DNA of 64,000 nt from IMGVR_UViG_3300044731_002337:1-64000; one strand, 5' to 3'; shown: positions 1,352 through 63,097, counted from the stretch's first letter. The notes: generated from the letters alone by a model not told the origin. Numbers and translations: made by a program.

Positions 1352-4123
1352 ATGGTAAACAGTTCATTATTATCGAGTACGAATTTGGCTTTCAGGTCAG
1401 GGATAGCGAAGGAGTTGATGTGTAGTTTGTCAGCACATGCTAATAATCAGTTTAGAGTGCAAGGTCAGGAGGATGCTAGATGTGATATTTTAAATGTGTC
1501 AAATATAGCGTGTCAACAATTGGATGGTACACCTCTATCTGATTATACAACAACTACATGGTTAGCAAACAATGCGGTTGCTTTACATGCGAATAGTACG
1601 GCTGGGGGTTCACCTATTGTCACTGAGGGTAATATTGGTTCCTTGTCATTGAGTTTGGGGGCGTCTGCAACAGTGGATGGCCATCCCATTGCAAGTTATG
1701 TTGGGTTAGCTTCGAATCAAGTAGATTTGCATAGTAATAGTACATTAGCCACTAGTCCTATTCTTTCGGTGGCTACCGCAGCGAGCCGTGGTGATATCGA
1801 CTTTAATTCAGATACGAGGATTGGTGGAGAATTGATTGCCTCTAGGCCGTATGTGGATAATGCGATCCAAGGTATTGATTGGAAGCAAGAGGTGGTAGTG
1901 CGTGTAGATTGTACGGATAGTGCTATTACTGTATCTAACCCAGGAACAGATTCCTTTGATGGGGTGACATTGGTGGTGAATGATCGTTTGTTGATTGTGA
2001 ATAATGGTGTGAATTCTGGTATTTATGTGTTCAAAGGTAGTTCTACAGCCATGGTTCGGGCGGATGATTGTAGTGTTGCATCAGAGTTTCATGGTGCATC
2101 TGTCTTTGTGAAGCGTGGTTCTCATGCGGCGAGTGCATGGACGTGTCATAGCTTTACAACGACTTCGAGTACTACTCCTCTTACGGATTTTGATTTGCCG
2201 TTTGTGTTGGGTACTCATATCCCACTGTTTTCTCAATTTGCGGGTGCTACATTGTTCAATGCGGGACATGGTATTGTTCGAAATGGTCAAATTTTGTCGG
2301 TGGACCAGGCAGTGGACTACACCTGGACCGGACATCATACTTTCGGTGGTGCATGGGAACAGAGTTTAGTTAATACCGCTGGAGACCCAAGAACTTCATC
2401 TCCTACATGGAATAGTGCACGATTTTCTGGGTTTACGGGAACGATTACTGATACTAATACGTCTCATACCGGAATTCAGTTTGCGGCGTTCAATCACTTT
2501 ACAGGTGGTACTTTGGTGAGTGGTGATTCTAGTGCTTCCTATGTTGCTACATCTGCGTATTTCGCTGAGCCTACGATTTCTGGTACTGTTGCTCAATCCA
2601 TGAAGTTTGCGTTGGTGTCTGGCGGCAAGGCTTTGTTGAAGTCGGCTGTGACCATGTCTGATACGTTAAATGTGTTGGGTGCATCAACGTTGCATTCGTT
2701 GACTGTTGGGTCTGGTCCCGGATGTGCAATCGATTCTTCAGGTAATGTTACATTGGGTACACTTGGCATGTATGGGGACTTGAATGTGCAAACTGGATTA
2801 TTTGAGACAACGACCAATACAGGTATTTCAACGAATCAAATGTTGACGGTTACTAAAGGCATTGTGGCAAGTGGTACAGATTTTAGTGTCTCGACTACTG
2901 GGGGTAATGTAGAGTGTGGAACGCTTACTGGTAGCGATATATCTGGTACTACTGGCTCATTCAGTTCAACTCTTGGTGTTACGGATGTTATCACCACGAA
3001 TGCTGGGTTGCAAGTTATTGTGTCGTCCAATAGTGTATTTTCGGTGAGTAACGTTGGTGAAGTGGTCGCGGCAAGTACAGGTGATTTTGGAGGTGACTTA
3101 ACTGTAGGTGATAATTTTAGTGTAACTGCCACAACTGGTGCGTTATCTGCAGCGAATAGTTTATTCCAGGTAGCAGCCTCAGGTGTTATCACGCATTGTC
3201 CTTCAGCGACATTTTCCAACTCATTGACTGTGAACAATAGCAGCACCTTCCATGTGGCGTCTGATGGTGACACGTTATTGCACGACTTGACGTTTTCTAC
3301 TGCATCTAACCATGATAATGCATTTCAAATTGATTATAATGGTGCGATTACTCATTGTGCTGGAATCCAAGTCACTGGTACTGTAGTGGCATCTGGAAAT
3401 GTCACGGGTGCATCGTTGATTGGTACCTCTGGTGTGATTAGTGGTGGCCTTAAGGTATCCAATATTAGTGGAAGTGACTATCGTTTCAACGTGGATGGCG
3501 GAAACGGTACATTGACGGGTATCAATGCCAATTTGACTGGTATCTTACAAACAGGTACTCCAACATTGAGCGTTTATCCTTTCGTGGTGGATGCGAATGG
3601 TGATGTGACGGCTGCTTCTATTGCTACAGAAAGTATCCACGTGAACACGGATAAGTTTGTGGTCAATTCTGATGGTGACGTGACTGCAGAAGGTACATGC
3701 GATGTGACTGGTGCTATTTCGGGTGCATCTCTCAGTGTGACTGGAAATGTTACTGCTACAAATGGTACATTTTCAGGTGATGTTGCGGCAAACTCTTATG
3801 AATCCACTTCAGATCAACGTTTTAAGACGGAAGTTGTGCCTATCTTGTCTGAAGGTGAACGCTTCGATCGTCTTAAGCCTGTAACTTTCGTGTGGAATGA
3901 GAAATCCCAGAGAACTAATGCGGTGGATGAACAGGGTAAGATTCAGAAGCAATGGGGTTTCTTGGCTCAGGAAGTGGGTGAAGTGTATCATGATCTCTTA
4001 CGTGGTTCTGAAGAGACCAACTACGCCTTGAACTATGATGGTTTCTTTTCCATTTTGGTGGCTGAAGTGCAAGCCTTGAGAAAGCGAACGGCTGAATTGG
4101 AAGCTAAGTTGGCTGCCCAATGA
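1352..4123 (+). CDS. Tail-fibre-like beta-rich protein with C-terminal peptidase S74 intramolecular chaperone domain
   Basis: Phage tail-fibre motif YVDNAIQGIDWKQEV..DGVTLVVNDRLLI..NSGIYV; long G/T/S/V-rich shaft; S74 signature SDQRFK..LKPVTFVW..GFLAQEV..LNYDGF..LVAEVQAL. Confidence 0.85.
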   Translation: MVNSSLLSSTNLAFRSGIAKELMCSLSAHANNQFRVQGQEDARCDILNVSNIACQQLDGTPLSDYTTTTWLANNAVALHANSTAGGSPIVTEGNIGSLSLSLGASATVDGHPIASYVGLASNQVDLHSNSTLATSPILSVATAASRGDIDFNSDTRIGGELIASRPYVDNAIQGIDWKQEVVVRVDCTDSAITVSNPGTDSFDGVTLVVNDRLLIVNNGVNSGIYVFKGSSTAMVRADDCSVASEFHGASVFVKRGSHAASAWTCHSFTTTSSTTPLTDFDLPFVLGTHIPLFSQFAGATLFNAGHGIVRNGQILSVDQAVDYTWTGHHTFGGAWEQSLVNTAGDPRTSSPTWNSARFSGFTGTITDTNTSHTGIQFAAFNHFTGGTLVSGDSSASYVATSAYFAEPTISGTVAQSMKFALVSGGKALLKSAVTMSDTLNVLGASTLHSLTVGSGPGCAIDSSGNVTLGTLGMYGDLNVQTGLFETTTNTGISTNQMLTVTKGIVASGTDFSVSTTGGNVECGTLTGSDISGTTGSFSSTLGVTDVITTNAGLQVIVSSNSVFSVSNVGEVVAASTGDFGGDLTVGDNFSVTATTGALSAANSLFQVAASGVITHCPSATFSNSLTVNNSSTFHVASDGDTLLHDLTFSTASNHDNAFQIDYNGAITHCAGIQVTGTVVASGNVTGASLIGTSGVISGGLKVSNISGSDYRFNVDGGNGTLTGINANLTGILQTGTPTLSVYPFVVDANGDVTAASIATESIHVNTDKFVVNSDGDVTAEGTCDVTGAISGASLSVTGNVTATNGTFSGDVAANSYESTSDQRFKTEVVPILSEGERFDRLKPVTFVWNEKSQRTNAVDEQGKIQKQWGFLAQEVGEVYHDLLRGSEETNYALNYDGFFSILVAEVQALRKRTAELEAKLAAQ

Positions 4124-8818: not shown

Positions 8819-10012
8819 TTAAGGGAATGGACATTGATGAGATCGAGCATAATCTAGCATATCAAGTTTGTCTCGGTAAGCGAACATTCGACATGCTTTG
8901 GCACTCCAAGGACATCCATGTTCATGGGCATACATTAGGATTTGTAGGTTGGCTGCATCAACGCATGTATCTTCATTCCAAGGGCATCCATGTTCATGTG
9001 CATAGATAAGCATGTCTAGGTTACCGAAAAAAGCGGCATTAGAGCATGTTTTAGCGTTCCATGGGCAATGATGTGCATGTAGATATTGTAATATAGCAAG
9101 ACTAGAGGCGTTGGAACAGGCTTCTTCATTCCAAGGGCATCCATGTTCATGTGCATACTTGATGATACGTAAGGTCTTGGCTTTTCGAAATAGTTGTTCA
9201 TTCCAAGGACATTGTTGTTCATGAAGGTATTGCAACACCTCTAATTGATCATATTTGGCTGCAAGTGTGGTCATATCTTCATTCCAACCGAGTGGCGGTG
9301 ATGAAATAAATTGTAAGATAGGTAATGCTCCATATCGTATAGCTATAGGGATGTAGTGATGATGGGGTAGATAGGTAGTATTGTTTGGTGATGATGATAA
9401 TAATTGGAACATGGGTAAATCATGTTGACGAATAGCCATTTCACATAATGGCATGATGTATTTATGTATACGTGTAGGTTGTTGTTGTAGAATGTATTGA
9501 CAAATAGAGACATGGCCTTTTTTGACTGCATATTGGGCTAGTTCCTTTCCATTCCACATGTAGTGATGTTCTCTTATGAATTGTAGTGAGCCTAATTGAT
9601 TGTATTCTACTGCCCAGCGACCCATTTGATTCGTGTGAGGTGTTAATTCATGGGGGTAATGATGGTGGAGATGAAGAAGTGCATTAATGTGTCCGTGTCG
9701 AATAGCTTGTTGGGCGAGATCAGGAACTTGTAACCATGGTGGAAATGGGAGTTCGTTTTGCAATAAGCGATACCATGATGAATAGTCACGTCGATGAAAA
9801 TAGGCTTCAATTAAAGGAATGTCCAAGTACCTATCTAAATATTCCAGTGGAGATTGAAGTGATGAAAAATCAACGTGATGAGTATGGTGGAAAAAGAAGA
9901 AACATAACATATGATATTGCTTAGGTGTAATCATATCTCGAACTTGAATAGGGCCATCTTCACATGATACAAATATAGGTGAATGTTTACCAAGATGTAT
10001 TCGCATATCCAT
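8819..10012 (-). CDS. Ankyrin-repeat protein (giant-virus EHGCPW type) with shared N-terminal YLDIP domain
   Basis: Repeated YAHEHGCPWNE units; N-terminal HSP..LEYLDRYLDIPLIE. Confidence 0.88.
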   Translation of the reverse strand: MDMRIHLGKHSPIFVSCEDGPIQVRDMITPKQYHMLCFFFFHHTHHVDFSSLQSPLEYLDRYLDIPLIEAYFHRRDYSSWYRLLQNELPFPPWLQVPDLAQQAIRHGHINALLHLHHHYPHELTPHTNQMGRWAVEYNQLGSLQFIREHHYMWNGKELAQYAVKKGHVSICQYILQQQPTRIHKYIMPLCEMAIRQHDLPMFQLLSSSPNNTTYLPHHHYIPIAIRYGALPILQFISSPPLGWNEDMTTLAAKYDQLEVLQYLHEQQCPWNEQLFRKAKTLRIIKYAHEHGCPWNEEACSNASSLAILQYLHAHHCPWNAKTCSNAAFFGNLDMLIYAHEHGCPWNEDTCVDAANLQILMYAHEHGCPWSAKACRMFAYRDKLDMLDYARSHQCPFP

Positions 10013-10033: not shown

Positions 10034-13000
10034 TTACTTTGCATGAATGATAAATTTGGTATGTAATTTCTGAATCATTTGTGAGCTTAGTCGTTTGAAT
10101 TGACTTTTAGAATGGGTGATGATGTAGTGGCCCATTTCGCGTCTTGTGTTTTCATCCACGTTGGGGAAATGATGAGAGACTAAATGAGAAATTTTCTGTA
10201 ATGAATCATCCAATAGTCCAGCTGCAAGTTTCATGGCGGTAGTTAAGCGTGTACAAGTAGAATGGGTAGAAAACATTTGTTCAACAGTTCGAATCATATG
10301 GTGAGTAATGAGTTGATCAGTATACTTTGACAGTAATTTCTCAACTTTTTTACGTCGTTTTCTACTGTGGTATAATTCTTCTTCATCAATGTAGTCGTAT
10401 ACATTAGTTTGCTCTAGATTATATTTGGTAATCAGAGTATCATGTATCATGCGTTGAATGATTGTAGTCAAGACATGAGTTGTTTCTTCAGGTAAGGAAT
10501 GCATTACATATTGACAAATTAGTTTTTGTAGTTTGGCATTTACGACAACTCGACCATTCTTACGGTGATATGTGATAGTTTTCTTTTTCTTCTTAGTTTT
10601 CGTCTTTAGTATCATTTCTTGTTCTACTTCAGTTTCAGTAGAGGTTTTGGAGGGTGAGGAAGGACTTGGTTGATAGGGTGGTGAAGGTATGTCATCTGAC
10701 TTGAGATCAGAATTATCAAGATTATCATCAAAGTGATCATCGAAATGTTCATGTGGGATGAATTTGGGGGAAGGTGTAGAGGCCATTTCGTCTGCATGCC
10801 GTGTAAGAATATCTGTGGTAGTATAGGATAGTTTGTTTCCATGAAATCGTTGAAATCGAAATAAAATGGTGTCATGTACTGGTCGTGCATCTAGCCATTT
10901 ATTTACCATTTTACAAAAATGTTTGGGAGAATCGATAAGAGTGATCACATGTTGAAGATCTTGTTTGGTGACTTTCTCTAGATTCAACATACAAGGTAAT
11001 AAATGATTCGATTCAGTAGCTGATGGATGAGGATATAAGAGATGACCTTCTGCATGAAATACTCGATGAAGGGTTGGATGGAGTTTACCCCATAAAGAGT
11101 ATAATTCATCATAATGTATAATAATCATCTTTTGTGGATGTGTAAGTAGAAACATATCAAACCATTTGGCAGGATTGTAACGTATAAATTGTTGGCAATA
11201 GTTGGATACGAATACATGTGGACCTAATGGTGTATCTATACCTGTTTGTTCATTGATTATACCATGGGAATTGATTTGAGTGTATGGATAATTGTTATCG
11301 ACAAACTGATCCGGATTATAAAGTATATCTACCTGTACTTCATTTTCCACTTCGATTTCTCGTTCTTGTTCTTGTTCCTGGTCGAGGATGGTCGAATGGG
11401 CGAGTGAGACTCGGTAACTACCTTGTTTAAGTTTGGTTGCGTAACGTATCAATTGTGTCTTTAAGTATTTTCGATTTGTTTCCATATCTTGCTGTTGTAA
11501 CTTATGCCATTGGTCGGGTAGTTGGTTGTTTGATTTGGGTTGTGTAGATGATAACTCATAAACAATGTGAAGAGAATGTTTATGTTCAGGTAAATGTATT
11601 CCTCGAATGCGATACATGGCTTGTACAACTTGATATTCTCGCATAGATTCATGGGCCATGAGTAATACGCGAAGGCTATGTGGATGTTTGATGTCTGTTC
11701 CTACAATGTGTGCATTATCGAAATAATAGAAATAGTGATGATCCTCATTGTTGAAGCTATTCGAGTTATTGGTGATAGAATAAAGGTGTTGATTTGGGTA
11801 TACCTTAGTCGTGTGTTTTGCATCAACATAGACAATGGGGCGCTTAGTGTGTTTATGTAATAAGTCAAGAACTTGAGAGGGTGTATATTGTTTACAGTAT
11901 CCACACGCATCAATAAATACGTCGTAATGGTGAATTGATGGCCAAATGTGTTGTATAGGTTTGATGTGTGGCGCTTGATCTTGTAGCAGTTTCACCACGT
12001 GACGGTATGAGCTATCACCTGTGACACATGTAATGTTAAGTTCATCACTGGAAGGAATTGCAATGGTTCCAGAAAATGCATATGTGATACATTGTTTTTG
12101 CTTAAGTATATCAACCATGGAGATCGTCTTGACAATATCAGTGTAGCATAGTTTGGGGAATAAACATTCAGATACATAGGCGCAAAGGAGATTTTTATGG
12201 GGTGCCACTAACTCTAGATCGCGACGTCGAGAGATGGTTCGTGTTAGCAGTTGTCGTTGGTCATGAGTGAGTGTCTTGGCGTGACGTAAAGCAATGCATG
12301 TTCCAATATATTTTACATCATTTGACGTGAATTCAGATGTGTCGTGGGGTACATCCATGGCGATATAAGGGACAATAAATAATGAATGATCGCGGAAGCC
12401 ATATTTAACGCGGTAAAGCCATTCATGTTCAATGGTGTGAATACAATGTCGCCAATGTTGAAATAAATACTCATAACCTTGATCACAGTATTGTAATTGA
12501 TCTTTATCCCAATGAGGGTAGTTTTCATGACAGATAATGATTTCGGGTAAGATGTGTTGGAACCAATGCATCATCTTTTCGGATAGCTTGAATGGGCCAT
12601 AACCTAGTCTTTCTTTCACTACTTGATTGTAATCAGATTTACAAGGCATACATACGCTATCATATTCATCGATGATCATCATGTCTGGTGTAAATGCGCC
12701 TGGTTTGTAGAGTAGATATAGTCGTTTGAGGTCAGCATCACTTACGACGTGAATAATGGAGAAACCAGGTCGCCGTGAAAGTTTGGCGGGGTGAAATCCG
12801 GTTCGAATAATAACCCATGGAATTAGTTGAAGGGCCATGACTTTTTGAAGTGCGTCCTTAACTAGGTGGCGTGGTTGGATCACGAGAATGTATATCCCAT
12901 GAGTGGTTAGTTGTGGGGAATGACGAATAGATTCTAGATAGTCTACAATTAAGTAAGGCATGATAATGGAGGATTTTCCCATGCCCATAAGGAGTTGAAT

Positions 13001-16000
13001 AGCACAATTATGTTTGGTCCCAGCATGTCTCTGTAATGCTTGTAGTATCTCGGTTTGATCAGGTCTGGGTTTCAATAGGTATACACGTTCCCAAAATGTA
13101 CGAATGGATTCATGGGGCGAAAAACGTCTCACGTAATGCTGGTCCCAATATGCAATCCAATCATCATAAATTAGACGTTGATCTATTGTATCTTTATTGA
13201 GATAATCCAACATAAATGACCCACTATATAGTAAAGGATTGATAGCGCTTACAACTTCATATACAAAGGGGCTATTTTCATTGAGGTTCATGGATAGAAC
13301 GGTGTATAGGGCAATCATATCTGTGACTGATATATTGATAAACCAGGAAAAGTCTGGTAAAAATTCAAGAATTGCAAAATGAGGGTCAATCACGATCTTG
13401 TCTCGAAGTGATGGGTCATGATGGCGATACATATCAAAACGTTTATGATGAAATAATCTGACTAATAATGCTCTTCTGTTTGGATTATCAGTGTGGAACA
13501 TGAGGCATACACTTGCAGTAGAATCATGACATGACCAGTGAAGTAGAGGATCTTTAATAACTTGATCATAATTCGTGTACCAACCATCATTTGGATTGTT
13601 GAGATGCCATCGATTCTGTATGCGGTACCAGGTATGGGAAGGAAGTTTCTGTTGTACGGAAATAAAACGAGCGGTAACTTGAGGTTCATTCGAAGAGGTA
13701 ACCTGTTGAGTAGATGTATCTTTAGTTTGAATCGAGTATCCATGTTCTCGCCATTGTGATGAATGCAAATCGAAGAATGTAATGAATTCACATACTGGTA
13801 ATGTCTTTTGATACATCCAATGTGATGTTATAGGATCCAAGGTGAGTTCAGGGTTTTCCATTGTAGTGATGGTTTGACCTGATGCTTTTATATGTAAATA
13901 GCGAAAGTGGCTGCTAGCATTACAATAGTTAATCAGTGGTTGGAATAATGTGGCGTCTTGACCTTGTAATGCGTAAATATAATAAATGAAGAGTTCTTTG
14001 TGAAAGGTTGGCGAGGTATTGAGAAATTGTTGGATGATCCAAGGTTCTGGATATTGTGGGTCTCGACATAATAGGAGGGCCAAATAATAATAGGCGAGAT
14101 TATCTTGTATATCAGGTCGAAATACGTGTTGAAGTTGTAATGTGACGCGGTAAGCTACACAGATGCCTAAATACAAGTGTAGATGTTCTGTAGGGATGGT
14201 GTGGTACTGGAGATGCCAAAAATGGTTACGTACCGTTTGGGCGTATTCGTCACGCTGTTGTAGGTTAAGTGTGGTGCAAGGTGAATGACGAAATGAAGTG
14301 ACAATGTCTCGAAATTGAATAGAGGCAAAAGAAAGATTACAGTTTAGGTTACCTTGAACGGGGATCATGATGGGTGATGTGGTAATGGTTTGGGATGGTT
14401 CCAATACAATAAAGTGTTGTATAAATTTGTCGAGCTCCTTCTTGTTTGTGGTGATGGGTTTATGTTTATGATTAATTTGGTTACGTAATTTAAAAGTAAT
14501 GAGTAAAGCGGTGAATGCATCAAGTTCAGAATGGAGTTGTAGTTTATGTTTCACGCTGAGTAGATCAGAAACCTTGGTTCGACTTTGAAAGAGTAGTTTG
14601 AGATATTGGTCTAAGGAGGCGCGTGATACCTTGGACACTACATAATTATACCATAGGAAGCCAAATGTATAATTAATCATACCGAAAATGTCAGTATTAA
14701 GATCTGGCTCGACAATGATTCTTCCTGTCAGGTAATAGGTGAGAAAACTGAACACATATGGAAATTGTTGTGCAGAAATGGTCTCTTTGGTTTGCCAGTA
14801 TAGACATGCTTCTTTACAATATTTAGCATCGATAATAAGTTTGAGATGATTATTGTATTGGTATGGCATTCGAGCGTGATTTAGCCATGGAAAGGTTTCA
14901 AATTCTTGGTTTGGAATCCAGTGAGTGTTGGTTGGAACAGTAAAGTATTCATATGCGGGATAAGAAGTATCTTTGGAATTGATATCATAATAATCAATGT
15001 GGAATGTACGAATTAATTTTTGATAAGTGTTTCGGTCGCATATTGCACCTTCTTTGCAGACGACATGTTGTAGAGCATGACCCATAGATAAGGTTTCGTT
15101 GGAGTCGATTTTGGTTGGTGCTTCGACATGTTTTTTCATGTAATTAAAAAAATCGGTAAAGTAGTGACAAACTTCTTGGAGGTGTTTTTGGTGTTGGGTG
15201 ATGAGCTGGTAGACGACATACCACAAGGTGCAATAAAAAGCGCATGTTCCTCCTAATTGGGGAGAGGCGTAAAGTCGACCTTCATGCCAGGTACATGCCA
15301 TTCTACCCATAGCATAGATGGTATAACGAGTTGGATGTTGTGGGATTTCAGGTGGAACGGTATGAAACTGTTGATACATTTCATCGGTATCATGGAATCG
15401 AATGGACTTGTCACCAGAAATGAGGAATTGTTTTAATTGGTCTTGAGATGGTTTGATGGGTTGTACAACATTGTACATGCCTTCAAGTTCATTATGGAAT
15501 TGTAATCCATCACCACTATTACATACAAACACTTGTTCACCAGGCCGAGTAAAGAGTATTGTTGCATGTCCAATCGTATTAAAAAGACGAACTGATGTAT
15601 ATGTTTCGTCTAATATATGGCAATAACTCTCGATAATTAGTTTATACATGTGCGGATCAGTACGATTAGCTAAAAAATGATAAGTCATCGCTCTGAGAAG
15701 ATCTTTGGTCATGATCTTGGTTTCACTGCCGTTACCATTTACCAATAAGTCTTGTAATGCAACTACATTCGCTAATTCTGATTGATTTAACAATAGACGG
15801 AATCGATTTAATGAGTCATACATTTCTTCGAGTGAAAGCAGCCATGGGAAATGTTCGGTAGGATGTACTTGGTATGCCCAAATATGTACCCCTAATTTGT
15901 TTACCTTTTTCATACTATGAAATTCTTTTATATCGTCATGAAGAATCAAGTTGGCGTAAGTAGTATCTACCATAACATTTACAAAGAATGGATTTTTCCA

Positions 16001-16027
16001 AAAGGTAATGGGGATATTATTTATCAT
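10034..16027 (-). CDS. ~2000-aa DUF3638/DUF3645-like protein: putative N-terminal Cys-peptidase plus SF2-like P-loop NTPase (paralogue 1)
   Basis: QLLMGMGKSSIIMP Walker A, IIDEYD Walker B, EQEQEREIEVENEV; N-terminal GHA..CNSG..QLGGTC. Confidence 0.75.
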   Translation of the reverse strand: MINNIPITFWKNPFFVNVMVDTTYANLILHDDIKEFHSMKKVNKLGVHIWAYQVHPTEHFPWLLSLEEMYDSLNRFRLLLNQSELANVVALQDLLVNGNGSETKIMTKDLLRAMTYHFLANRTDPHMYKLIIESYCHILDETYTSVRLFNTIGHATILFTRPGEQVFVCNSGDGLQFHNELEGMYNVVQPIKPSQDQLKQFLISGDKSIRFHDTDEMYQQFHTVPPEIPQHPTRYTIYAMGRMACTWHEGRLYASPQLGGTCAFYCTLWYVVYQLITQHQKHLQEVCHYFTDFFNYMKKHVEAPTKIDSNETLSMGHALQHVVCKEGAICDRNTYQKLIRTFHIDYYDINSKDTSYPAYEYFTVPTNTHWIPNQEFETFPWLNHARMPYQYNNHLKLIIDAKYCKEACLYWQTKETISAQQFPYVFSFLTYYLTGRIIVEPDLNTDIFGMINYTFGFLWYNYVVSKVSRASLDQYLKLLFQSRTKVSDLLSVKHKLQLHSELDAFTALLITFKLRNQINHKHKPITTNKKELDKFIQHFIVLEPSQTITTSPIMIPVQGNLNCNLSFASIQFRDIVTSFRHSPCTTLNLQQRDEYAQTVRNHFWHLQYHTIPTEHLHLYLGICVAYRVTLQLQHVFRPDIQDNLAYYYLALLLCRDPQYPEPWIIQQFLNTSPTFHKELFIYYIYALQGQDATLFQPLINYCNASSHFRYLHIKASGQTITTMENPELTLDPITSHWMYQKTLPVCEFITFFDLHSSQWREHGYSIQTKDTSTQQVTSSNEPQVTARFISVQQKLPSHTWYRIQNRWHLNNPNDGWYTNYDQVIKDPLLHWSCHDSTASVCLMFHTDNPNRRALLVRLFHHKRFDMYRHHDPSLRDKIVIDPHFAILEFLPDFSWFINISVTDMIALYTVLSMNLNENSPFVYEVVSAINPLLYSGSFMLDYLNKDTIDQRLIYDDWIAYWDQHYVRRFSPHESIRTFWERVYLLKPRPDQTEILQALQRHAGTKHNCAIQLLMGMGKSSIIMPYLIVDYLESIRHSPQLTTHGIYILVIQPRHLVKDALQKVMALQLIPWVIIRTGFHPAKLSRRPGFSIIHVVSDADLKRLYLLYKPGAFTPDMMIIDEYDSVCMPCKSDYNQVVKERLGYGPFKLSEKMMHWFQHILPEIIICHENYPHWDKDQLQYCDQGYEYLFQHWRHCIHTIEHEWLYRVKYGFRDHSLFIVPYIAMDVPHDTSEFTSNDVKYIGTCIALRHAKTLTHDQRQLLTRTISRRRDLELVAPHKNLLCAYVSECLFPKLCYTDIVKTISMVDILKQKQCITYAFSGTIAIPSSDELNITCVTGDSSYRHVVKLLQDQAPHIKPIQHIWPSIHHYDVFIDACGYCKQYTPSQVLDLLHKHTKRPIVYVDAKHTTKVYPNQHLYSITNNSNSFNNEDHHYFYYFDNAHIVGTDIKHPHSLRVLLMAHESMREYQVVQAMYRIRGIHLPEHKHSLHIVYELSSTQPKSNNQLPDQWHKLQQQDMETNRKYLKTQLIRYATKLKQGSYRVSLAHSTILDQEQEQEREIEVENEVQVDILYNPDQFVDNNYPYTQINSHGIINEQTGIDTPLGPHVFVSNYCQQFIRYNPAKWFDMFLLTHPQKMIIIHYDELYSLWGKLHPTLHRVFHAEGHLLYPHPSATESNHLLPCMLNLEKVTKQDLQHVITLIDSPKHFCKMVNKWLDARPVHDTILFRFQRFHGNKLSYTTTDILTRHADEMASTPSPKFIPHEHFDDHFDDNLDNSDLKSDDIPSPPYQPSPSSPSKTSTETEVEQEMILKTKTKKKKKTITYHRKNGRVVVNAKLQKLICQYVMHSLPEETTHVLTTIIQRMIHDTLITKYNLEQTNVYDYIDEEELYHSRKRRKKVEKLLSKYTDQLITHHMIRTVEQMFSTHSTCTRLTTAMKLAAGLLDDSLQKISHLVSHHFPNVDENTRREMGHYIITHSKSQFKRLSSQMIQKLHTKFIIHAK
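13673..13703 (-). repeat. Single in-frame unit of core family 1 inside the 1997-aa CDS
   Basis: GGTAAC-TTGAGGTTCATTCGAAGA-GGTAAC encodes VTSSNEPQVT; not present in the paralogue. Confidence 0.8.
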
Positions 16028-16045
16028 TTTTTTTTTGTTTTTATT

Positions 16046-19000
16046 TTACATAAGAAAACTTTTGATTAGTTTTTGTTTCATAGTAGAACTGAGTCGAGAA
16101 AATAGACAACCACTTTTAGCATGCGTAACTACAAATTTGGCCATATTACGTTTTATGTTATCCTCCACATTGGGGAAATGATGAGAGACTAAATAGAAAG
16201 ATTTTTGTAATGAATCGTCTAGTAGTCCAGCTGCAAGTTTCATGGTGGTTGTTAGACGAGTAAATGTAGAGTGAGAGGAGAACATGTGTTCAATGGTACG
16301 AATCATGTGATGGGTAATAGGTTGATCTGTATATTTCTCTACAAGTTTTTTAACCTTTCTTCTTCGTTTTCGACTTTGAACTAATTCTTCTTCGTCAATG
16401 TATCCATACACATTGGTTTGGTCAAGATTGTATTTGGTCAGTGTAAGATCATGACTCATGTTATGGATGAGTATAGTCGTGACTCGAATAGTTTCTTCAG
16501 GTAGACATTCCAAAACATATTTTCGGATACGTTTTTGCATGGATGGACTGACGACAAGTTGACCGTCAATGCGATGAACTTTGGGTATTCTGGATTTGGG
16601 AATAGTATAGTAATGAGTCAAGTCTGGTTCTGGTTCAGTTTTGGATGATGATGAGGAAGAATTTATAATGATTGGTGAGGCTTTACTTACAATGGGTGGT
16701 ATCATTGTCATGGCAACTTGCGGTAATGTAATTGGTGCTTCCGCTGGTGGTGGTGGTGGTGGTGAAGCAGGTTTGAGGATAGAGGATGATGGATAGATGT
16801 ATTTATGAGTATACTCTTTTGATGTTTGGGAAATGGTATAAAAAAGTCGTTTTCGATCGGCATTCGATGAAAAGAGTATGGTGTGGCTTAAAGGGCGAGA
16901 CATATGACATAGACTTTCCATGTTTTTGAATTCGGAAGGAACAGAAATTTGTTTGGCAATTTCAGTGAGGTGTGTAGAGGTTACACTGGATAAATAAAGC
17001 ATTGTGGCAATCATGGGGTGAAAGGCTTTAGTTGACGCGGTTGGATAGATAAGATGACCTGTAGCATGAAATACCTTGTGTTTGTTAGGTAATAGTTTGC
17101 CCCATAATGTATATAATTCATCATAATGGATAATAATTGATTTAGGATAATGCTCAAGGATAAATAGATCATACCATGTTATATAATTTTCACGAACAAA
17201 TTCTTTACAATATTTGGAAAGAAAAGTATGGGGACCAAATGAAATTTCGTTGGATGAAGCATTGTAGTTGATACGCCCTTGATTATCAATATGGGTATGA
17301 TTTTGGCGAATAACACGTTTGATAGTTAGTTTTACATGATAGGTATCTATTTCTACTTCATTTTCAACTTCTTTTTCATTTTCCTTTTCCTGTTCCAATT
17401 CAAGCATAGATGCTGGTTGATCATTACAATCCTCATGCATTATTTGATAAGACTTTTTAGCAATTTTCTTGTCATTCCTTAGTAGTAATATGTCTAAATA
17501 TTTGGCGTTAGTTTGTATATCTCTGTGTTGAGCATCTCTCCAAATGGTGACTAATGAGTTGTTGGGGGTTAACGATTCGTAAGCGAAAGTAATATCATGT
17601 TCGTTAGTGGGTACATCAATACCTCGAATGCGATACATGGCTTGTACGACTTGATATTCTCGTAATGATTCATGTGTCATGAGTAGAATGCGTAGTTTTC
17701 GAGGATGTTTTATGTCTGTACCTACAATGTGGGTATGATCAAAGAAGTAAAAATATGATTTGGACATATCAAACGTATTCGAGGTTCTGGTTTCAGAATA
17801 CACATGATTTTCTGGGTACACCATAGTAATGTGTTGTGAATTAACATAGACGATAGAGCATTTCACGTGTTCATGAAGCAATTCAATGATTTCCTGTTGT
17901 GAGTGATCTTTGCAATAGCCGCACGCATCAATAAAGACGTTGTAATGTTTGAGGTCAGCCCATAGATTCGTCTTGGGTGAAATGCATCTCATCTTGTGTC
18001 GGTTAGATTCGAGAATGTGTATTACTTTGGAGTAGGATTGATCCTTGGTGACGCAGGTGACATTTAATTGAGGGCTGGAAGGGATGGCTACAGTACCGGA
18101 GAAAGCATAGACGATACCGTGTTTTTGTCGTAATATATCTACCATGGTAATATTATTGACAATGGTACTGTAATGGAGTTGTGGGAATAAACATTCGGAT
18201 GCGTAGGTGCATAAGGGATTATTCTTGTCATCACTAGGTTGAATAATGCGTAATTTGAGGCGTCGATGAGTGGTTGCTTTGAGTAGTCGTTGTTGTTCTC
18301 GAGTGAGGTGACCTTCATGTCGTAGAGCCATACAGGTAGCAATGAAATTGACATCATTGGACGAAAATTCAGAGGATTCATGTGGTATGTCCATGGCAAT
18401 ATAAGGGACAACAAATAAGGAAGCTTTAGGTCCCGTATGTCGAAATCCATACTTGACTCGATAAATCCATTGATGATGAATCGTATGTACACATGTTTTC
18501 CAATGGGTAAATAATCGTTCTTGACCTGGATCACAATATTCGGATTGTTCTGTATCCAGTAAATCATATCGTTGGGTCATGATGATTTGGGGTAATCGAT
18601 GTTGAAACCAATGTAACATTTTGGGGGAAAGTGATGTATTACAACTATAGCCTCTTTGTTCTGCTACCACTTCATTATAGTCTGATTTACAAGGCATACA
18701 GATGCTATCATATTCATCGATGATCATCATATCAGGAATGAATTCATTGGGTTTTAATTTGAGATAGAGTCTCTTGAGATCGGTATCGCTTACTACGTGT
18801 ATGACAACATGGGATTTACGTCGAGTTAAGAGTTGGTCGGTGATGCCATAACGAACAATGACCCAAGGAATAAAGTTGAATGTAATAATTTTCTGTAGGG
18901 CGTCTTTGGTTAGGTGGCGAGGTTGAACGACTACAATGTATAGGCCTTGTTGATGCAGTTGTGGTAATGTGGTGGCATTTTGTAAATAGTTGACGAGTAG

Positions 19001-22000
19001 ATAGGGCATGATGATGGATGATTTTCCCATGCCCATGAGGAGTTGAATTACGCAATTGGGTCCTTTGGCTGCACCTTTCTCTAGTGCTTCTATTACATCC
19101 TTTTGGGCTGGTGTTGGAGTGAGGGGATATATACGCCCCCAAAAAGAGGAAACTGTATCTCGGGGTGTAAAAAGGCGTATATAATGTGTATCCCAATAGG
19201 TAATCCAGTCTTGTGGTAATATTCTCTTTGGGGAGTCCTTATTCAAGTAGTCGATCATGTAGGAGCCGCCATACATAAGTGGATCATAAGCAGAGGCAAC
19301 TTCATAAACTCGATTAGCATTAATGTTATGGTTTTCGGCGAGAATACGGTAAAGAACAACTATGTCCGTGATGGATAAGTCCTTAAACCATGTGTAATCT
19401 GAAGTAAATTCAATGATACCAAAATAAGGGTCAGTATGGATTTGGGATCGATAGGTTTCGTTTTGGTGTATATAGGAATCGTGACAATAGGAGTTGGTAT
19501 AATAGAGTAACAAGCCTCTTCTGGAAGGGTGGCTGGTATGATACATGAGACATATGGATGCGGCTTCAGCGTGACATGACCAGTGTAGTAAAGGATCAGA
19601 AATGACTTGAGAATAGTTGGTGAACCATCCTTCAGTGGGGTGATGTAAATGCCATTGTTGAGGTGTCACACTATACCAATTATGAGAAGGAATGCTTGGA
19701 GTAGTGGATCTATATCTCACAATACTGACATTATTTTTTTGGGTTCTTATCATGTATCCATACTTACAAAAGGGATCTTCTGGGAAACGAAAGAAGCTAT
19801 TTAATGGTTCGACTTTATCCCCATCATAGAACCATGTTCGAGTATTTTTGACTAATTGGAGAAGTGGTTCCTCAACCGTCGAGGTAGCGTCAGACGTCAT
19901 ATGTAGTTTTCGAAAAGCTGAGCTACATGAACACTGTTGCCATAATAATGTGATGGAGGATGATTTGCGAGTAGCATACAAATAGTATAAATAAATCTCT
20001 TGGGACTTGTTACGTGGGAGTGTTAAACGAATAAACTGGTCCATTATCCATTCTTCTGTATATTGTTTATCATCTCGACATAAAAGTAATGCTAGATAAT
20101 AATAGGGCAATGTAGAAAGAGGCAATTGCTTGTGTAGATTAGGGATGAGTACGTTGGATAATTGTAGTGTGACATTATAGGCTATACAGATACCCATATA
20201 AAGGTGGAGGTTGGATTCAGGGATATCATGAAATTTTAGATATTCAAAATGGTGACGAACACAGGACATTTCGATATCTTGTTGTTCTTTGGGTAGTAAC
20301 ACAACTTGACCGAATTCTATGCTTACCATTTTGGTGTTAAACTTCATGTCACCATATACGGGTATCAGTAAAGGAGAGAATTCAGTAACTTGTGTCGTCG
20401 GTGAAGCTTTATATTGGGACAGTAGTTTGCCAATGTCTTCATTTTTCACTAGAGGAGGAATAAACATATTGTTATAGCCTAATTGTTGATGTAACTTGCC
20501 AGCAATAACGAATGTGGCAAAAGTATCATGGTACAATTTTAGTTGTAACTTAACTGATGCATCGATAATATCTTCTTTGTTGACATCATTCCTCAAAATA
20601 TCACTTATGATATTGGTAACGAGAACAGTCCCCACTTTTGAGGTAATGTAATTATGCCACAGGCTACCGAAAGTGAGGTGTAACATTCTGAATAAGTCCG
20701 CCTGATGTGAACTAAGGGCCATAGCCATACTCGTGCAAAAATAACGTAAAAAACGCAACACTAAAGGAAATTGGGTGTCTGTAATCATCGATTTAGATTG
20801 CCAATGATGACATGCTTGTTTCACATATAATCCATTCATCAGTAATCGTAAGTCAGCTCCCATTCGTAATCTGGAATCTTCATGGTGAAACAGCCATGCA
20901 AATGTTTCGAATTCATTTGTTTGATCCCAGATTTGATCAAGACCTAACTTGGGATCTTCCCTAATTAAGTAATCTGTCTTGGTCAAGTTATGTCCATATA
21001 TCCTTCTATGATAATCGAGAACTAGCTTGTCATAGGTTTTATCACATTGTCGATTCTCTTTGCATAGTACATGTTGTAATGTGTACCCTTTGGAAGCAAT
21101 TGGGGTAGAAACAACTTGAATGGGTGATGCAACATGTTGTCTCATGTATTTTAAAAATTCCTCTATATACAACCCAATTTTTACTGCGCCGTGTTGACTG
21201 GTAGTAAGTAAACGGTATACGAGCAACCACACATTACAATAAAACGTACATGTGCCACCCAACTGTGGACTAGCATAAAGACATTGAGCGTCTTGATGAT
21301 AAGAGAAAATCATACGCGACATGCTGTACACGGTATATTTCTTAGTGGTAGCTGGTGGTGGTGGGGATACTAAATTAAGTTGTTCATAAATATCATCTAC
21401 TCTAGAAAAACTTATGGTTTTGGTGTTTTTACGTACAAGTGACATGAATTCATGATCTGGAATAATTTCTTGAATGACATTGTACATAGACTCGAAAGTA
21501 GCATGATTTTGTAGTCCACTTCCACTATTACTAATAAACCATTTCCTATTTTTCTCATCATGGAATAACAGCATAGCATGACCAGATGAATTCAATTCTC
21601 GTACTTTCATTTCATTAGGGTCCAATACTTCCAATAAGAATAACATAATATGAAAATACATTTGATGATCTGTATCTGCTTCATTTCCTCCCATCATCCC
21701 AAAGTCATGTAAATGGCGCATTGTCATGGCGTGAATCAATTCTTTGGCCATGCGTGCAGTTGTACTTCCGACATTAGGTTTGATTAATTCCTCCATAGCA
21801 ACAATATGGGCTAATTCGGAATCATTAAGTCGCAATTTATAGTTATCAATTCTTTTGATAATCTCTTTTTCAGAAATTTGCCAGGGAAGTCGTTTCTTAG
21901 GGTAATGTAGATGAGCCCATACAAATAATAGTAATGGAGTTTGTTCATTTGTTTTATAAACTTCTAGACTTGAAAGATCATGGCGTAATACATTCATTGC

Positions 22001-22060
22001 TATAGTTTCCATGAATATTTCCAAAAACTGTAAATTTCTCCATAATGCTTTTGGGATCAT
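16046..22060 (-). CDS. ~2000-aa DUF3638/DUF3645-like protein (tandem paralogue 2)
   Basis: Colinear with 10034..16027 along its whole length: GHA..SNSG..QLGGTC, QLLMGMGKSSIIMP, IIDEYD, shared C-terminal domain. Confidence 0.75.
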   Translation of the reverse strand: MIPKALWRNLQFLEIFMETIAMNVLRHDLSSLEVYKTNEQTPLLLFVWAHLHYPKKRLPWQISEKEIIKRIDNYKLRLNDSELAHIVAMEELIKPNVGSTTARMAKELIHAMTMRHLHDFGMMGGNEADTDHQMYFHIMLFLLEVLDPNEMKVRELNSSGHAMLLFHDEKNRKWFISNSGSGLQNHATFESMYNVIQEIIPDHEFMSLVRKNTKTISFSRVDDIYEQLNLVSPPPPATTKKYTVYSMSRMIFSYHQDAQCLYASPQLGGTCTFYCNVWLLVYRLLTTSQHGAVKIGLYIEEFLKYMRQHVASPIQVVSTPIASKGYTLQHVLCKENRQCDKTYDKLVLDYHRRIYGHNLTKTDYLIREDPKLGLDQIWDQTNEFETFAWLFHHEDSRLRMGADLRLLMNGLYVKQACHHWQSKSMITDTQFPLVLRFLRYFCTSMAMALSSHQADLFRMLHLTFGSLWHNYITSKVGTVLVTNIISDILRNDVNKEDIIDASVKLQLKLYHDTFATFVIAGKLHQQLGYNNMFIPPLVKNEDIGKLLSQYKASPTTQVTEFSPLLIPVYGDMKFNTKMVSIEFGQVVLLPKEQQDIEMSCVRHHFEYLKFHDIPESNLHLYMGICIAYNVTLQLSNVLIPNLHKQLPLSTLPYYYLALLLCRDDKQYTEEWIMDQFIRLTLPRNKSQEIYLYYLYATRKSSSITLLWQQCSCSSAFRKLHMTSDATSTVEEPLLQLVKNTRTWFYDGDKVEPLNSFFRFPEDPFCKYGYMIRTQKNNVSIVRYRSTTPSIPSHNWYSVTPQQWHLHHPTEGWFTNYSQVISDPLLHWSCHAEAASICLMYHTSHPSRRGLLLYYTNSYCHDSYIHQNETYRSQIHTDPYFGIIEFTSDYTWFKDLSITDIVVLYRILAENHNINANRVYEVASAYDPLMYGGSYMIDYLNKDSPKRILPQDWITYWDTHYIRLFTPRDTVSSFWGRIYPLTPTPAQKDVIEALEKGAAKGPNCVIQLLMGMGKSSIIMPYLLVNYLQNATTLPQLHQQGLYIVVVQPRHLTKDALQKIITFNFIPWVIVRYGITDQLLTRRKSHVVIHVVSDTDLKRLYLKLKPNEFIPDMMIIDEYDSICMPCKSDYNEVVAEQRGYSCNTSLSPKMLHWFQHRLPQIIMTQRYDLLDTEQSEYCDPGQERLFTHWKTCVHTIHHQWIYRVKYGFRHTGPKASLFVVPYIAMDIPHESSEFSSNDVNFIATCMALRHEGHLTREQQRLLKATTHRRLKLRIIQPSDDKNNPLCTYASECLFPQLHYSTIVNNITMVDILRQKHGIVYAFSGTVAIPSSPQLNVTCVTKDQSYSKVIHILESNRHKMRCISPKTNLWADLKHYNVFIDACGYCKDHSQQEIIELLHEHVKCSIVYVNSQHITMVYPENHVYSETRTSNTFDMSKSYFYFFDHTHIVGTDIKHPRKLRILLMTHESLREYQVVQAMYRIRGIDVPTNEHDITFAYESLTPNNSLVTIWRDAQHRDIQTNAKYLDILLLRNDKKIAKKSYQIMHEDCNDQPASMLELEQEKENEKEVENEVEIDTYHVKLTIKRVIRQNHTHIDNQGRINYNASSNEISFGPHTFLSKYCKEFVRENYITWYDLFILEHYPKSIIIHYDELYTLWGKLLPNKHKVFHATGHLIYPTASTKAFHPMIATMLYLSSVTSTHLTEIAKQISVPSEFKNMESLCHMSRPLSHTILFSSNADRKRLFYTISQTSKEYTHKYIYPSSSILKPASPPPPPPAEAPITLPQVAMTMIPPIVSKASPIIINSSSSSSKTEPEPDLTHYYTIPKSRIPKVHRIDGQLVVSPSMQKRIRKYVLECLPEETIRVTTILIHNMSHDLTLTKYNLDQTNVYGYIDEEELVQSRKRRRKVKKLVEKYTDQPITHHMIRTIEHMFSSHSTFTRLTTTMKLAAGLLDDSLQKSFYLVSHHFPNVEDNIKRNMAKFVVTHAKSGCLFSRLSSTMKQKLIKSFLM

Positions 22061-22088
22061 GTTTCTTTTTTTTTCTACTTATTCCGAA

Positions 22089-22784
22089 ATGGTATGGAAA
22101 AAAAAAAGAAATGATTTGAATTCCATTGGAATTATGAATCATAAGTGGAAAGGGTTTGTGGAACAGGAAAGTGTGGAAGTTGAATTGAAAAGTATTCACA
22201 AGAAGTTGGATGAGTATTATAAACATCAAAAAATAGTTCCTCCACGTGAAGTTGTATTTCGTATCTTTGATGATTTGGCTCCACATGATATTCGTGCTGT
22301 AATTATTGGTCAAGATCCATATATCAATCTTGGAGAAGCGGATGGATATAGTTTTAGTGTTCCTGTGGGTATGAAGATTCCACCATCACTACAACGTATT
22401 GGAAAAGTTTTGGGTATCAATTTTGCAACCCGTAAACAAGGTGGATGTTTGGAATCATGGGTGGATCAAGGTGTATTCTTGGTGAATGCTTCGTTAACGA
22501 CATTGCAAGGACAATCCAAGAAGCATACTTTACTCTGGAATAAGTTTTTTGTGGAATTCATGAAATGGATGGCCATTCATACTGAGCATATTGTTTATTT
22601 CTTGTGGGGAAACGATGCCAAGTCATATCAACACTTGATTAACAAGGATAACAATTTGGTTCTTACTTCACGTCATCCATCACCATTGGCTGGAAATGGC
22701 TTTGAAAGGGACGCTAAATTTCATTTCCAAGATGCGAATGCCTATTTGCTCAAGCATAACAAAGACCCTATTGATTGGGTTTAG
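22089..22784 (+). CDS. ung: Uracil-DNA glycosylase (family 1)
   Basis: GQDPY catalytic motif, FSVP, GVFLVNASLT, SRHPSPL; start moved to an ATG (22089, or 22134) that does not overlap the upstream gene. Confidence 0.95.
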   Translation: MVWKKKRNDLNSIGIMNHKWKGFVEQESVEVELKSIHKKLDEYYKHQKIVPPREVVFRIFDDLAPHDIRAVIIGQDPYINLGEADGYSFSVPVGMKIPPSLQRIGKVLGINFATRKQGGCLESWVDQGVFLVNASLTTLQGQSKKHTLLWNKFFVEFMKWMAIHTEHIVYFLWGNDAKSYQHLINKDNNLVLTSRHPSPLAGNGFERDAKFHFQDANAYLLKHNKDPIDWV

Positions 22785-39690: not shown

Positions 39691-39704
39691 AAAATTTTCA
39701 AAAG

Positions 39705-39777
39705 TACACAAGACGAGACTCGAACTCGTGACTTTTGGCTCATAAGACCAACACTCTACCAACTGAGCTACTTGTGT
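39705..39777 (-). tRNA. tRNA-Ile (anticodon UAU), intronless
   Basis: 73-nt cloverleaf: acceptor ACACAAG/CTTGTGT, TAGCTCAGTTGGTAGA, anticodon arm TTGGT-CTTATGA-GCCAA, GTTCGAGTC; T-runs downstream. Confidence 0.95.
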
Positions 39778-62860: not shown

Positions 62861-63097
62861 ATGTCGGGAATGCAAATTTTTGTCAAGACGTTAACTGGGA
62901 AAACCATTACATTGGATGTGGATTCAGCGGATACTGTTGCATCGATAAAGCAAAAAATTCAAGATAAGGAAGGGATTCCACCTGACCAACAGAGATTGAT
63001 ATTTGCAGGGAAACAATTGGAAGATGAACGTACTCTTGCCGATTACAATATTCAGAAGGAGTCGACTCTCCATCTAGTATTACGTTTACGAGGCTAA
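62861..63097 (+). CDS. Ubiquitin ending at Gly75 (LRLRG*), with a short MSG leader
   Basis: Near-canonical ubiquitin sequence; codons CGT TTA CGA GGC TAA. Confidence 0.95.

Follow-up and report, generated by a model that had tools for sequence, protein, structure and literature searches.

Tandem genes in a lake-water virus record fuse an AnkH/AnkD-like, putative thiol hydrolase domain to a divergent DUF3638/DUF3645 NTPase

INTRODUCTION

By predicted fold, the closest described counterparts of the protein domain reported here are the middle "cysteine protease-like" domains (PF28177, T4SS_AnkD, in Pfam 38) of the Legionella pneumophila effectors AnkH (LegA3; structure 6MCA) and AnkD/LegA15 (7EW8, 7KJ6, and 7XQL). 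The domain belongs to two adjoining genes in the sequence IMGVR_UViG_3300044731_002337:1-64000, a stretch of 64,000 nucleotides (nt), here called the window, with which an IMG/VR virus record from lake water (294,773 bp; GC content, 38%) begins. The two genes encode the proteins P0001 (2004 amino acids [aa]) and P0002 (1997 aa). In AnkH, the conserved patterns are rGHa, D/NRg, and GNCSWANV, the triad is His243/Asp258/Cys324, and the domain is related to, and superposes on, the Ulp-family clan CE peptidase XopD (PMC6712400). The AnkH triad, although required in vivo, has an inactive configuration, and in vitro tests detected no protease activity (PMC6712400). LegA15, with a putative triad of H268-N290-C361 and the conserved residues Q353, Q356, D359, C361, and T362, was reported to bind and hydrolyze GTP in a Cys-dependent manner, with C361 activating the water; R291, K367, and R408 bind the nucleotide, and the exchange C361S abolishes the GTPase activity, while H268A has little effect (PMC9757750).

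Clan CE peptidases, such as Ulp1/SENP (family C48), adenain (C5), XopD, African swine fever virus (ASFV) pS273R (C63), SdeA, and YopJ (C55), have the residue order His, Asp/Asn/Glu, Gln, Cys in common with the proteins described here. An Asn as the third residue has a precedent in ASFV pS273R, and SdeA carries its CE-type domain at the N terminus of a large multienzyme effector. In Ulp/SENP enzymes, a Trp that follows the His lines the Gly-Gly tunnel.

The DUF3638/DUF3645 family consists of large proteins that occur widely in fungi, protists, giant viruses, and Legionellales; many of them have been automatically labeled "ubiquitinyl hydrolase." In the literature that we searched, DUF3638/DUF3645 was never more than the label of a domain to which no function had been assigned. 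Pfam describes DUF3638 as a eukaryotic family.

RESULTS

Gene pair and domain architecture

P0001 and P0002 are intact open reading frames (ORFs), read with the standard code without breaks or internal stops, and lie head to tail with a spacer of 18 nt (Table 1). Together they span 12,027 nt, or 18.8% of the window, in line with a first-pass annotation made from the nucleotide sequence, which had described tandem ~6-kb paralogs taking up 19% of it. The proteins are 44% identical over their full length (BLASTP) and follow the same plan, namely, an N-terminal His-Asn-Gln-Cys domain, a middle region, a DUF3638/DUF3645 NTPase of the superfamily 2 (SF2) type, a linker, and a C-terminal domain. Identity amounts to 30 to 38% over the first 400 residues, 52 to 63% over residues 1001 to 1500, 19% in the low-complexity linker, and 50 to 68% in the last ~180 residues, which make up the shared C-terminal domain that had been noticed at first pass. 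This last domain is absent from the other family members and from the other ORFs of the 295-kb record and is thus private to P0001 and P0002.

N-terminal domain

Three motifs mark the N-terminal domain of both paralogs: GHA (His161 in P0001, His154 in P0002), (S/C)NSG (Asn178 and Asn170), and SPQLGGTC (Gln266 and Cys271, Gln257 and Cys262). Along with the downstream motifs QLLMGMGKS (residues 1010 to 1015 in P0001 and 1015 to 1020 in P0002) and DEYD (1115 and 1120), they all stand at equivalent positions in the two proteins, and their order, His-Asn-Gln-Cys, is that of clan CE, as the first-pass annotation had stated. Its further claim that these residues are conserved despite heavy divergence also held up in a joint alignment of 38 sequences (9 viral sequences and the N termini of 29 Legionellales proteins of 3000 to 5000 aa that also carry DUF3638). 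At an overall identity of 12 to 23%, His161 is kept in 37/38 sequences, Asn178 in 38/38, Gln266 in 35/38, and Cys271 in 37/38. A second His, His186 in the motif NSGxGLxxH, had been missed by the annotation and is invariant (38/38), also in the degenerate relative P0005.

Relatives of the domain were hard to find by standard means. The domain matched no Pfam family and nothing meaningful in NCBIfam, and the PDB gave no match in a sequence search with P0001 or in profile searches, including one with the 38-sequence alignment. In a word-index homolog search, the P0001 N terminus found only its own protein and P0004 found only P0004, and scans of IMG/VR with two alignments yielded no relatives. 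When 1.84 billion representatives were searched exhaustively with HMMER and a profile of the two paralogs, a single match was returned, P0004 (829 aa; E value, 1.9e-4), encoded on a metagenome contig of marine or aquatic origin; it keeps the motifs as GHS..LF, TNSGEGL..H, and SQLSGSCTFY. The gene upstream of P0004, at one end of the locus L003, has an adenain/Ulp-like pattern (H..., FDPYG, GDPNGFCVAWC), and its product would be a second, different His-Asp-Cys protease-like protein encoded next to P0004. Further relatives were reached through the NTPase core (see below), and the N termini of five of them (P0006, L009, L010, L011, and L012) keep the His, Asn, Gln, and Cys. The gene for another, P0005, lies head-to-head with a homolog of Skp1, the SCF ubiquitin ligase adaptor, on three independent contigs.

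We modeled P0001 residues 36 to 350 with AlphaFold2 (AF2) from nine sequences, at a pLDDT of 65.5 (~80 in the core) and a pTM of 0.63; an earlier run from three sequences (pLDDT, 43.6) was discarded. His161 is predicted to be the first residue of strand 126-133 of the model, Asn178 the last residue of the next strand (138-143), and Cys271 the first residue of a long helix (236-252). In this moderate-confidence model, the placement of His, Asn, and Cys fits a papain- or CE-like arrangement. A caspase-like His...Cys enzyme of clan CD and a 3C-like enzyme of clan PA were rejected because the Cys is predicted to stand at a helix N terminus, five residues behind a Gln, and the His and Asn to lie on a β-hairpin.

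Searches of three structure libraries with this model gave AnkH or AnkD/LegA15 as the best matches, suggesting that the domain shares its fold with theirs. Among the best 50 Foldseek matches in the PDB, AnkH (6MCA) ranked at the top (E value, 0.019; probability, 0.87), and the next match followed at an E value of 0.24 and a probability of 0.08. The top two matches of an ESM Atlas shape search were clusters of Dot/Icm substrates with PF28177 (T4SS_AnkD), at a template modeling (TM) score of 0.45 over ~197 aligned residues (next TM score, 0.32), and in a third search (41 matches listed), LegA15 chains, including the GDPNP complex 7xql, were among the four best. The comparison by AlphaFold and Foldseek that the annotation had proposed thus led to AnkH/AnkD, with no canonical clan CE structure among the matches listed. 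In BFVD, N-terminal fragments of Klosneuvirinae proteins matched best (E values of 1e-4 to 2e-2); the proteins, from Hokovirus, Fadolivirus, Hyperionvirus, Yasminevirus, and Harvfovirus, bear the names "DUF3638 domain-containing protein" or "ubiquitinyl hydrolase 1." To judge from these structural matches, the fusion therefore appears to be present in described giant viruses too; the exhaustive HMMER search did not recover the Klosneuvirus proteins, so the link is structural only.

For a comparison at the level of sequence profiles, AnkH orthologs were collected with a DNA pattern for GNCSWANV, and 52 of them were aligned, among them L. pneumophila AnkH, recovered with its published numbering. 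In hhalign, the viral profile aligned to the 52 AnkH sequences with a score of 40.4 (P value, 1.9e-4) and paired His161 with His243, Asn178 with Asp258, Gln266 with Gln319, and Cys271 with Cys324, whereas reversed and column-shuffled controls scored 12 to 19 (P values of 0.17 to 0.8). A combined viral and bacterial profile gave a P value of 5e-4. We regard the link to AnkH as a remote homology that is probable but unproven. AnkH, AnkD/LegA15, and the viral proteins have the residue order His, Asp/Asn, Gln, Cys in common, with these residues placed by the model on equivalent secondary-structure elements, and the viral GHA, NSG, and QxxGTC[ST][FW] motifs correspond to rGHa, D/NRg, and QxxGNCSW of AnkH. 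The spacing of Gln at -5, Cys, and Ser/Thr at +1 is likewise common to Gln266/Cys271 and to Q356/C361/T362 of LegA15. AnkH/AnkD and the viral proteins alike belong to organisms whose replication takes place within amoebae or protists.

There are also clear differences. The viral domain stands at the N terminus of a protein of 2000 aa, ahead of an SF2 NTPase, unlike the middle domain of AnkH/AnkD; its insert between Asn and Cys has ~90 residues, compared with 66 to 71 in AnkH/LegA15; and, unlike AnkH/AnkD, P0001 and P0002 have no Ank match in Pfam, the ankyrin-repeat protein encoded next to them being a separate gene. The family has the Gln and Cys but, with the registration taken from the motifs, lacks the GTP-binding Arg and Lys of LegA15: the position after Asn, equivalent to R291, is Ser/Ala/Thr in 38/38 sequences, and the position equivalent to K367 (Cys+6) is never Lys or Arg. 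The viral domain may also have in common with clan CE a spacing of ~17 from the His to the third residue and a Cys at a helix N terminus, as judged from the model; the link to clan CE is indirect, by way of the published similarity of AnkH to XopD.

NTPase core

The annotation's assignment of the central region to a DUF3638-type, SF2-like NTPase was corroborated from several sides, although the Pfam scores of the two paralogs stay below the gathering cutoffs (24.4 to 26.5 bits for DUF3638 [PF12340; cutoff, 31] and 14.5 to 23.2 bits for DUF3645 [PF12359; cutoff, 25]). A word-index search with residues 940 to 1560 found two metagenomic relatives of ~1800 to 1900 aa, P0005 and P0006, and a weak match to a Pyrenophora protein of 3211 aa that carries DUF6606, DUF3638, and DUF3645, and a metagenome scan added four full-length relatives (L009 to L012) and two shorter ones (L013 and L014). 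Across 10 sequences, the SF2 motifs are kept as MGxGKS (I), VQPxHL (Ia), IIDE(Y/F)D (II), (F/Y)SGT (III), (V/I)GxD(I/V) (V), and QA(M/I)(Y/F)R(I/L)R (VI). DUF3638 was matched by 9/10 of the NTPase relatives, and single relatives matched DEAD (1e-4), ResIII (5.9e-5), and SecA_DEAD (1.3e-3) weakly. A PDB profile search with the NTPase family gave no match. By its sequence motifs, the center of P0001 and P0002 is thus a very divergent DUF3638/DUF3645 member, an SF2 helicase-like P-loop NTPase with motifs I to III, Ia, V, and VI intact. The short relatives L013 (1291 aa) and L014 (1090 aa) have the motifs MSKGKSA, IIDEFD, YSGT, and QAIFRLRK; their N termini are too short for the His-Asn-Gln-Cys domain and the middle region, and the NTPase therefore occurs without them.

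Aligned with hhalign to the fungal protein P0007 (DUF3638, 304 bits), the viral family reached a probability of 95.4% and an E value of 1.9e-8 over 291 columns, which include DUF3645 and the motif V/VI region, the second RecA-like half. The NTPase core is therefore homologous to that of eukaryotic DUF6606-DUF3638-DUF3645 proteins such as Pyrenophora teres PTT_13180 (3211 aa), whose UniRef name, "ubiquitinyl hydrolase 1," is automatic. The N-terminal domains differ. Fungal members carry DUF6606 there, and the N-terminal family showed no similarity (probability, 0.1%) to P0007 residues 1 to 420 (DUF6606) or 1 to 2000; nor was DUF6606 matched by Pfam in the 38 members or in the full-length P0009, the Legionellales protein described next.

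Related proteins in Legionellales

When four Legionellaceae genomes were searched with the nine-sequence viral profile, a Tatlockia metagenome-assembled genome gave a match (E value, 8.2e-5) in a 3528-aa ORF, P0009. Its N-terminal motifs are GGHQVIF, VINSGDGLNYH, and GGQLSPTCTQR, and it carries a bona fide DUF3638 (79.6 bits) with the motifs GGGKSK, DEAH, TGT, and QGIMRMR. The P0009 N terminus was found in 75/203 genomes of its order, mostly in frames of 3000 to 5000 aa and often several times per genome, for instance in Legionella nautarum (4191-aa ORF), and at least 40 frames carry the N-terminal domain with DUF3638 ~5.5 kb downstream. DUF3638 itself scored above the Pfam cutoff in 86/203 Legionellales genomes, in ORFs of 3000 to 5000 aa, of which a genome often has several and at most six (e.g., G004:C37:401-10987 and G001:C4). 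Compared with hhalign, the viral N termini and 29 bacterial ones aligned over 250 columns with a probability of 95.5% and an E value of 1.5e-8, and the His, Asn, second His, Gln, and Cys were all aligned.

At the level of sequence, then, the N-terminal ~300 aa are a domain of an unannotated family that is fused to the NTPase both here and in many Legionellales proteins of 3000 to 5000 aa. The viral proteins, P0009, and the L. nautarum protein have the order in common, with the N-terminal H-N-H-Q-C domain followed by the DUF3638 NTPase. They differ in length, the bacterial proteins being roughly double the size of the viral ones, with long C-terminal extensions and ~1500 aa between the domains rather than ~600; their DUF3638 scores (~70 to 100 bits) are well over the cutoff, compared with 24 to 26 bits in the virus, and motif II is DEAH instead of DEYD. 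ESM Atlas feature searches gave no usable match with P0001 residues 1 to 420 and only weak leads with P0009 residues 1 to 360 (ShET2/Toxin_15, 0.78; YopJ, 0.77), which we did not use as evidence.

Independent copies of the gene pair

The genes for P0001 and P0002 are real and under selection, and they form a tandem duplication in a large DNA virus from lake water. Near-identical copies of the stretch with the gene pair occur in lake-water metagenomes from eight studies. A contig of run X2, an independent lake metagenome, bridges the P0001/P0002 junction (positions 15141 to 16263) with 0 differences, so the pair is not an assembly artifact. In run X6, from another metagenome study, a strain variant is ~97% identical over positions 13050 to 19049 of the window; the 40 differences listed comprise 23 synonymous and 17 nonsynonymous, mostly conservative, changes, and a 1-nt insertion behind position 16026 falls within the intergenic spacer.

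The database version of P0001, P0003 (1988 aa), starts 16 codons downstream. Several residues upstream of the P0003 start Met are kept in P0002 (I2, P3, W7, N9, and F12). The first 50 nt of the P0001 ORF (22011 to 22060) are overlapped by an ORF for a uracil-DNA glycosylase on the opposite strand.

Table 1. Positions of the gene pair, its domains and motifs, and other features (window coordinates unless another locus is named)
Feature	Position	Strand	Remarks
P0001, paralog 1	16046..22060	-	
P0001 N-terminal AnkH/AnkD-like, thiol-hydrolase-like domain	21011..21955	-	aa 36-350
P0001 His161 codon (GHA)	21578..21580	-	Putative general base
P0001 Asn178 codon (NSG)	21527..21529	-	Putative third triad member
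P0001 His186 codon (NSGxGLxxH)	21503..21505	-	Invariant second His
P0001 Gln266...Cys271 (PQLGGTC)	21248..21265	-	Putative oxyanion Gln and nucleophile Cys
P0001 NTPase core, DUF3638/DUF3645, SF2 type	17441..19183	-	aa 960-1540; DUF3638, 24 to 26 bits; DUF3645, 21 to 23 bits
P0001 motif I, GMGKSS	19016-19033	-	
P0001 motif II, DEYD	18707-18718	-	
P0001 motif III, SGT	18092-18100	-	
P0001 motif V, VGTDI	17711-17725	-	
P0001 motif VI, QAMYRIRG	17621-17644	-	
P0001 C-terminal domain	16049..16600	-	aa 1821-2004
P0002, paralog 2	10034..16027	-	P0001-like architecture
P0002 N-terminal domain	14978..15922	-	aa 36-350
P0002 His154	15566-15568	-	
P0002 Asn170	15518-15520	-	
P0002 His178	15494-15496	-	
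P0002 Gln257	15257-15259	-	
P0002 Cys262	15242-15244	-	
P0002 NTPase core	11408..13150	-	
P0002 motif I	12968-12985	-	
P0002 motif II	12659-12670	-	
P0002 motif III	12065-12073	-	
P0002 motif V	11690-11704	-	
P0002 motif VI	11600-11623	-	
P0002 C-terminal domain	10037..10567	-	aa 1821-1997
Peptidase_S74 chaperone-domain protein	1352-4123	+	~1000 aa
Ankyrin-repeat protein	8819-10012		Neighbor of P0002
Uracil-DNA glycosylase ORF	22011-22784	+	
tRNA-Ile	39704-39777	-	Anticodon TAT
Peptidase_S74 chaperone-domain protein	57600-60902	-	~1000 aa; additional legume-lectin-like domain
Virus ubiquitin gene	62861-63097	+	PF00240; E value, 9e-34
Gene upstream of P0004	L003 3-530	+	
Skp1 homolog beside P0005	L004 2012-2632		
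Skp1 homolog beside P0005	L005 9366-9986		
Skp1 homolog beside P0005	L006 2030-2650		
Short NTPase relative	L013 6789-10661		
Short NTPase relative	L014 7368-10637		

Genomic setting

We take the record to derive from a large DNA virus with a protist host. The 295-kb record, estimated to be 55% complete, encodes a family B DNA polymerase; profile searches of it for the capsid (PF04451) and VLTF3 (PF04947) of nucleocytoplasmic large DNA viruses gave no match at this estimated completeness. Genes in the neighborhood of the pair encode ankyrin-repeat proteins, a T4-type RNA ligase, a Kdo/WaaP-like kinase, the uracil-DNA glycosylase, and two large Peptidase_S74 proteins, whose C termini are intramolecular chaperone domains of the phage tail spike/fiber type. 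The virus ubiquitin has an MSG extension ahead of MQIFVKTL and ends in LRLRG-stop, with one Gly in place of the usual Gly-Gly. On the plus strand, the GC skew is positive in 29/32 2-kb bins of the window, often at 0.2 to 0.35, independently of gene strand and including the 12 kb of the minus-strand genes P0001 and P0002.

DISCUSSION

As a whole explanation of these genes, we propose a DUF3638/DUF3645 ATPase fused to an AnkH/AnkD-related, putative thiol hydrolase that acts on a host substrate, and we give this proposal an even chance of being right. That the N-terminal domain is a clan-CE-like thiol hydrolase is reasonably supported by the residue placement in the model, the AnkH/AnkD matches, and the profile alignment, and the "clan-CE-like Cys protease" of the first-pass annotation therefore survives in part: the AnkH/AnkD fold match and the residue placement in the model agree with it, while no canonical CE peptidase and no Pfam CE family was matched. 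In the proposed mechanism, Cys271 at the helix N terminus would serve as the nucleophile and His161 as the base, with the His oriented by Asn178 and the oxyanion hole formed by Gln266; the invariant His186 may have an additional role. We speculate that the hydrolase acts on a host (protist) protein or protein conjugate, with ubiquitin or a similar modifier as just one candidate among others, and that the ATPase delivers, unfolds, or positions the substrate or targets the enzyme to a nucleic acid or protein complex. The fusion common to the virus and Legionellales is probably an uncharacterized host-manipulation enzyme.

Several findings weigh against this proposal. The triad of AnkH is in an inactive configuration, with no protease activity in vitro (PMC6712400), and LegA15, in which the Cys is required for GTP hydrolysis, R291, K367, and R408 bind nucleotide, and the His is nearly dispensable, was reported to be a GTPase (PMC9757750). 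The hhalign probability of the viral profile against AnkH is only 47%, and the bacterial N termini alone did not align significantly with AnkH (P value, 0.059). Ulp/SENP, adenain, XopD, YopJ, and the SdeA deubiquitinase were all missing from the structure matches listed (50, 50, and 41), for which the weak model is a possible cause, and hmmscan found no match to Pfam CE or other peptidase families (C48, C5, C55, C57, C63, and others), at E values of ≤1 with the whole proteins and ≤10 with the 38 domains. The N terminus of P0005 has lost the His, Gln, and Cys, and its NTPase motifs are retained; thiol chemistry is therefore dispensable in at least one lineage. Lastly, none of the RNA runs searched contains P0001 or P0002.

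The annotation had gone on to suggest a deubiquitinase or deSUMOylase. In its full form, this reading makes the N-terminal domain a clan CE enzyme (deubiquitinase, deSUMOylase, or deNEDDylase) for the removal of host ubiquitin-like modifiers, and it would account for the His-Asn-Gln-Cys order and for the 17-residue His-Asn hairpin, a spacing like that of Ulp1 and adenain, but the Trp that follows the His in Ulp/SENP enzymes is absent, the motif being GHAM. Circumstantially, the ubiquitin gene of the virus lies 41 kb away in the window and a Skp1 gene lies beside one relative, and "ubiquitinyl hydrolase 1" is the UniRef/UniProt name of fungal and Klosneuvirus DUF3638 proteins, but such names are automatic only. 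Deubiquitinase domains that occur in both amoeba symbionts and giant viruses set a precedent (PMC3482391), and the AnkH domain does superpose on the Ulp-family XopD, but no isopeptidase activity was shown for AnkH (PMC6712400). A complex prediction of the N-terminal domain with the virus ubiquitin scored 0.01, which is no answer and counts neither way. With nothing that points specifically to ubiquitin, SUMO, or NEDD8, an AnkH without protease activity, a LegA15 reported to be a GTPase, and neither a Pfam CE family nor a canonical CE peptidase among the matches, we consider this reading unlikely and do not maintain that part of the annotation. An atypical GTP hydrolase like LegA15/AnkD, in which the Cys and Gln would position a water on the γ-phosphate, accommodates the rank of the LegA15 chains, including 7xql, among the four best structural matches, and the Q266-x4-C271-T272 spacing equals that of Q356-x4-C361-T362 in LegA15, where C361S abolishes the GTPase activity and H268A has little effect (PMC9757750). 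We rank it below the thiol hydrolase, as quite improbable, because the R291 and K367 equivalents are not basic in 38/38 sequences, by motif registration, and because the retention of His161 in 37/38 sequences is more in keeping with a catalytic role of this His than with dispensability.

Two further possibilities concern what the domain does within its own protein. A cis-acting protease that cuts the 2000-aa precursor, for example, to free the private C-terminal domain, much as processing peptidases cut giant toxins and viral polyproteins, would suit very large multidomain proteins with a low-complexity linker ahead of that domain. Papain-like peptidases with a processing role are frequent among giant bacterial toxins and effectors (PMC3482391). 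It is nevertheless highly improbable, as we identified no conserved cleavage motif and as other family members, which lack the C-terminal domain, still keep the catalytic residues. The domain might instead be a noncatalytic scaffold or pseudoenzyme, its conserved residues being structural or ligand binding and the ATPase the sole enzyme. The state of P0005, with all its NTPase motifs, would be expected in that case, as would the inactive AnkH triad for which no activity was found (PMC6712400), and strict invariance is limited to Asn178 and His186 and does not extend to the Cys. A Cys at a helix N terminus in 37/38 sequences and a Gln at -5 in 35/38, maintained at 12 to 23% identity across viruses and bacteria, are hard to explain without chemistry, and we therefore give the pseudoenzyme little chance. 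If the N-terminal domain is inactive, our finding reduces to a divergent pair of DUF3638 paralogs.

P0001 and P0002 are divergent members of the known but uncharacterized DUF3638/DUF3645 family. Three points appear to be undescribed, as our literature search brought up nothing on them: the H-N-H-Q-C N-terminal domain, its link to AnkH/AnkD, and the regularity with which it is fused to DUF3638 in giant viruses as well as in Legionellales. The search also found nothing on the giant Legionellales DUF3638 proteins themselves.

The conserved residues give a concrete catalytic hypothesis, centered on Cys271, His161, and Lys1013. The fusion also points to a host-manipulation module common to intracellular bacteria and giant viruses of protists, and the family offers an independent case for asking whether the AnkH/AnkD-type fold is a protease or a nucleotide hydrolase. 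A broader view, which is possible but which we hold with considerable doubt, is that the N-terminal domain represents an unrecognized thiol hydrolase family, almost always fused to DUF3638 and exchanged between Legionellales and giant viruses with common protist hosts, and that the fusion is an ATP-driven protein-processing machine whose motor would feed or position a host protein or conjugate for Cys-dependent cleavage. If true, this would provide the first mechanistic handle on the DUF3638/DUF3645 family and would bear on the protease-versus-GTPase dispute over the AnkH/AnkD domains.

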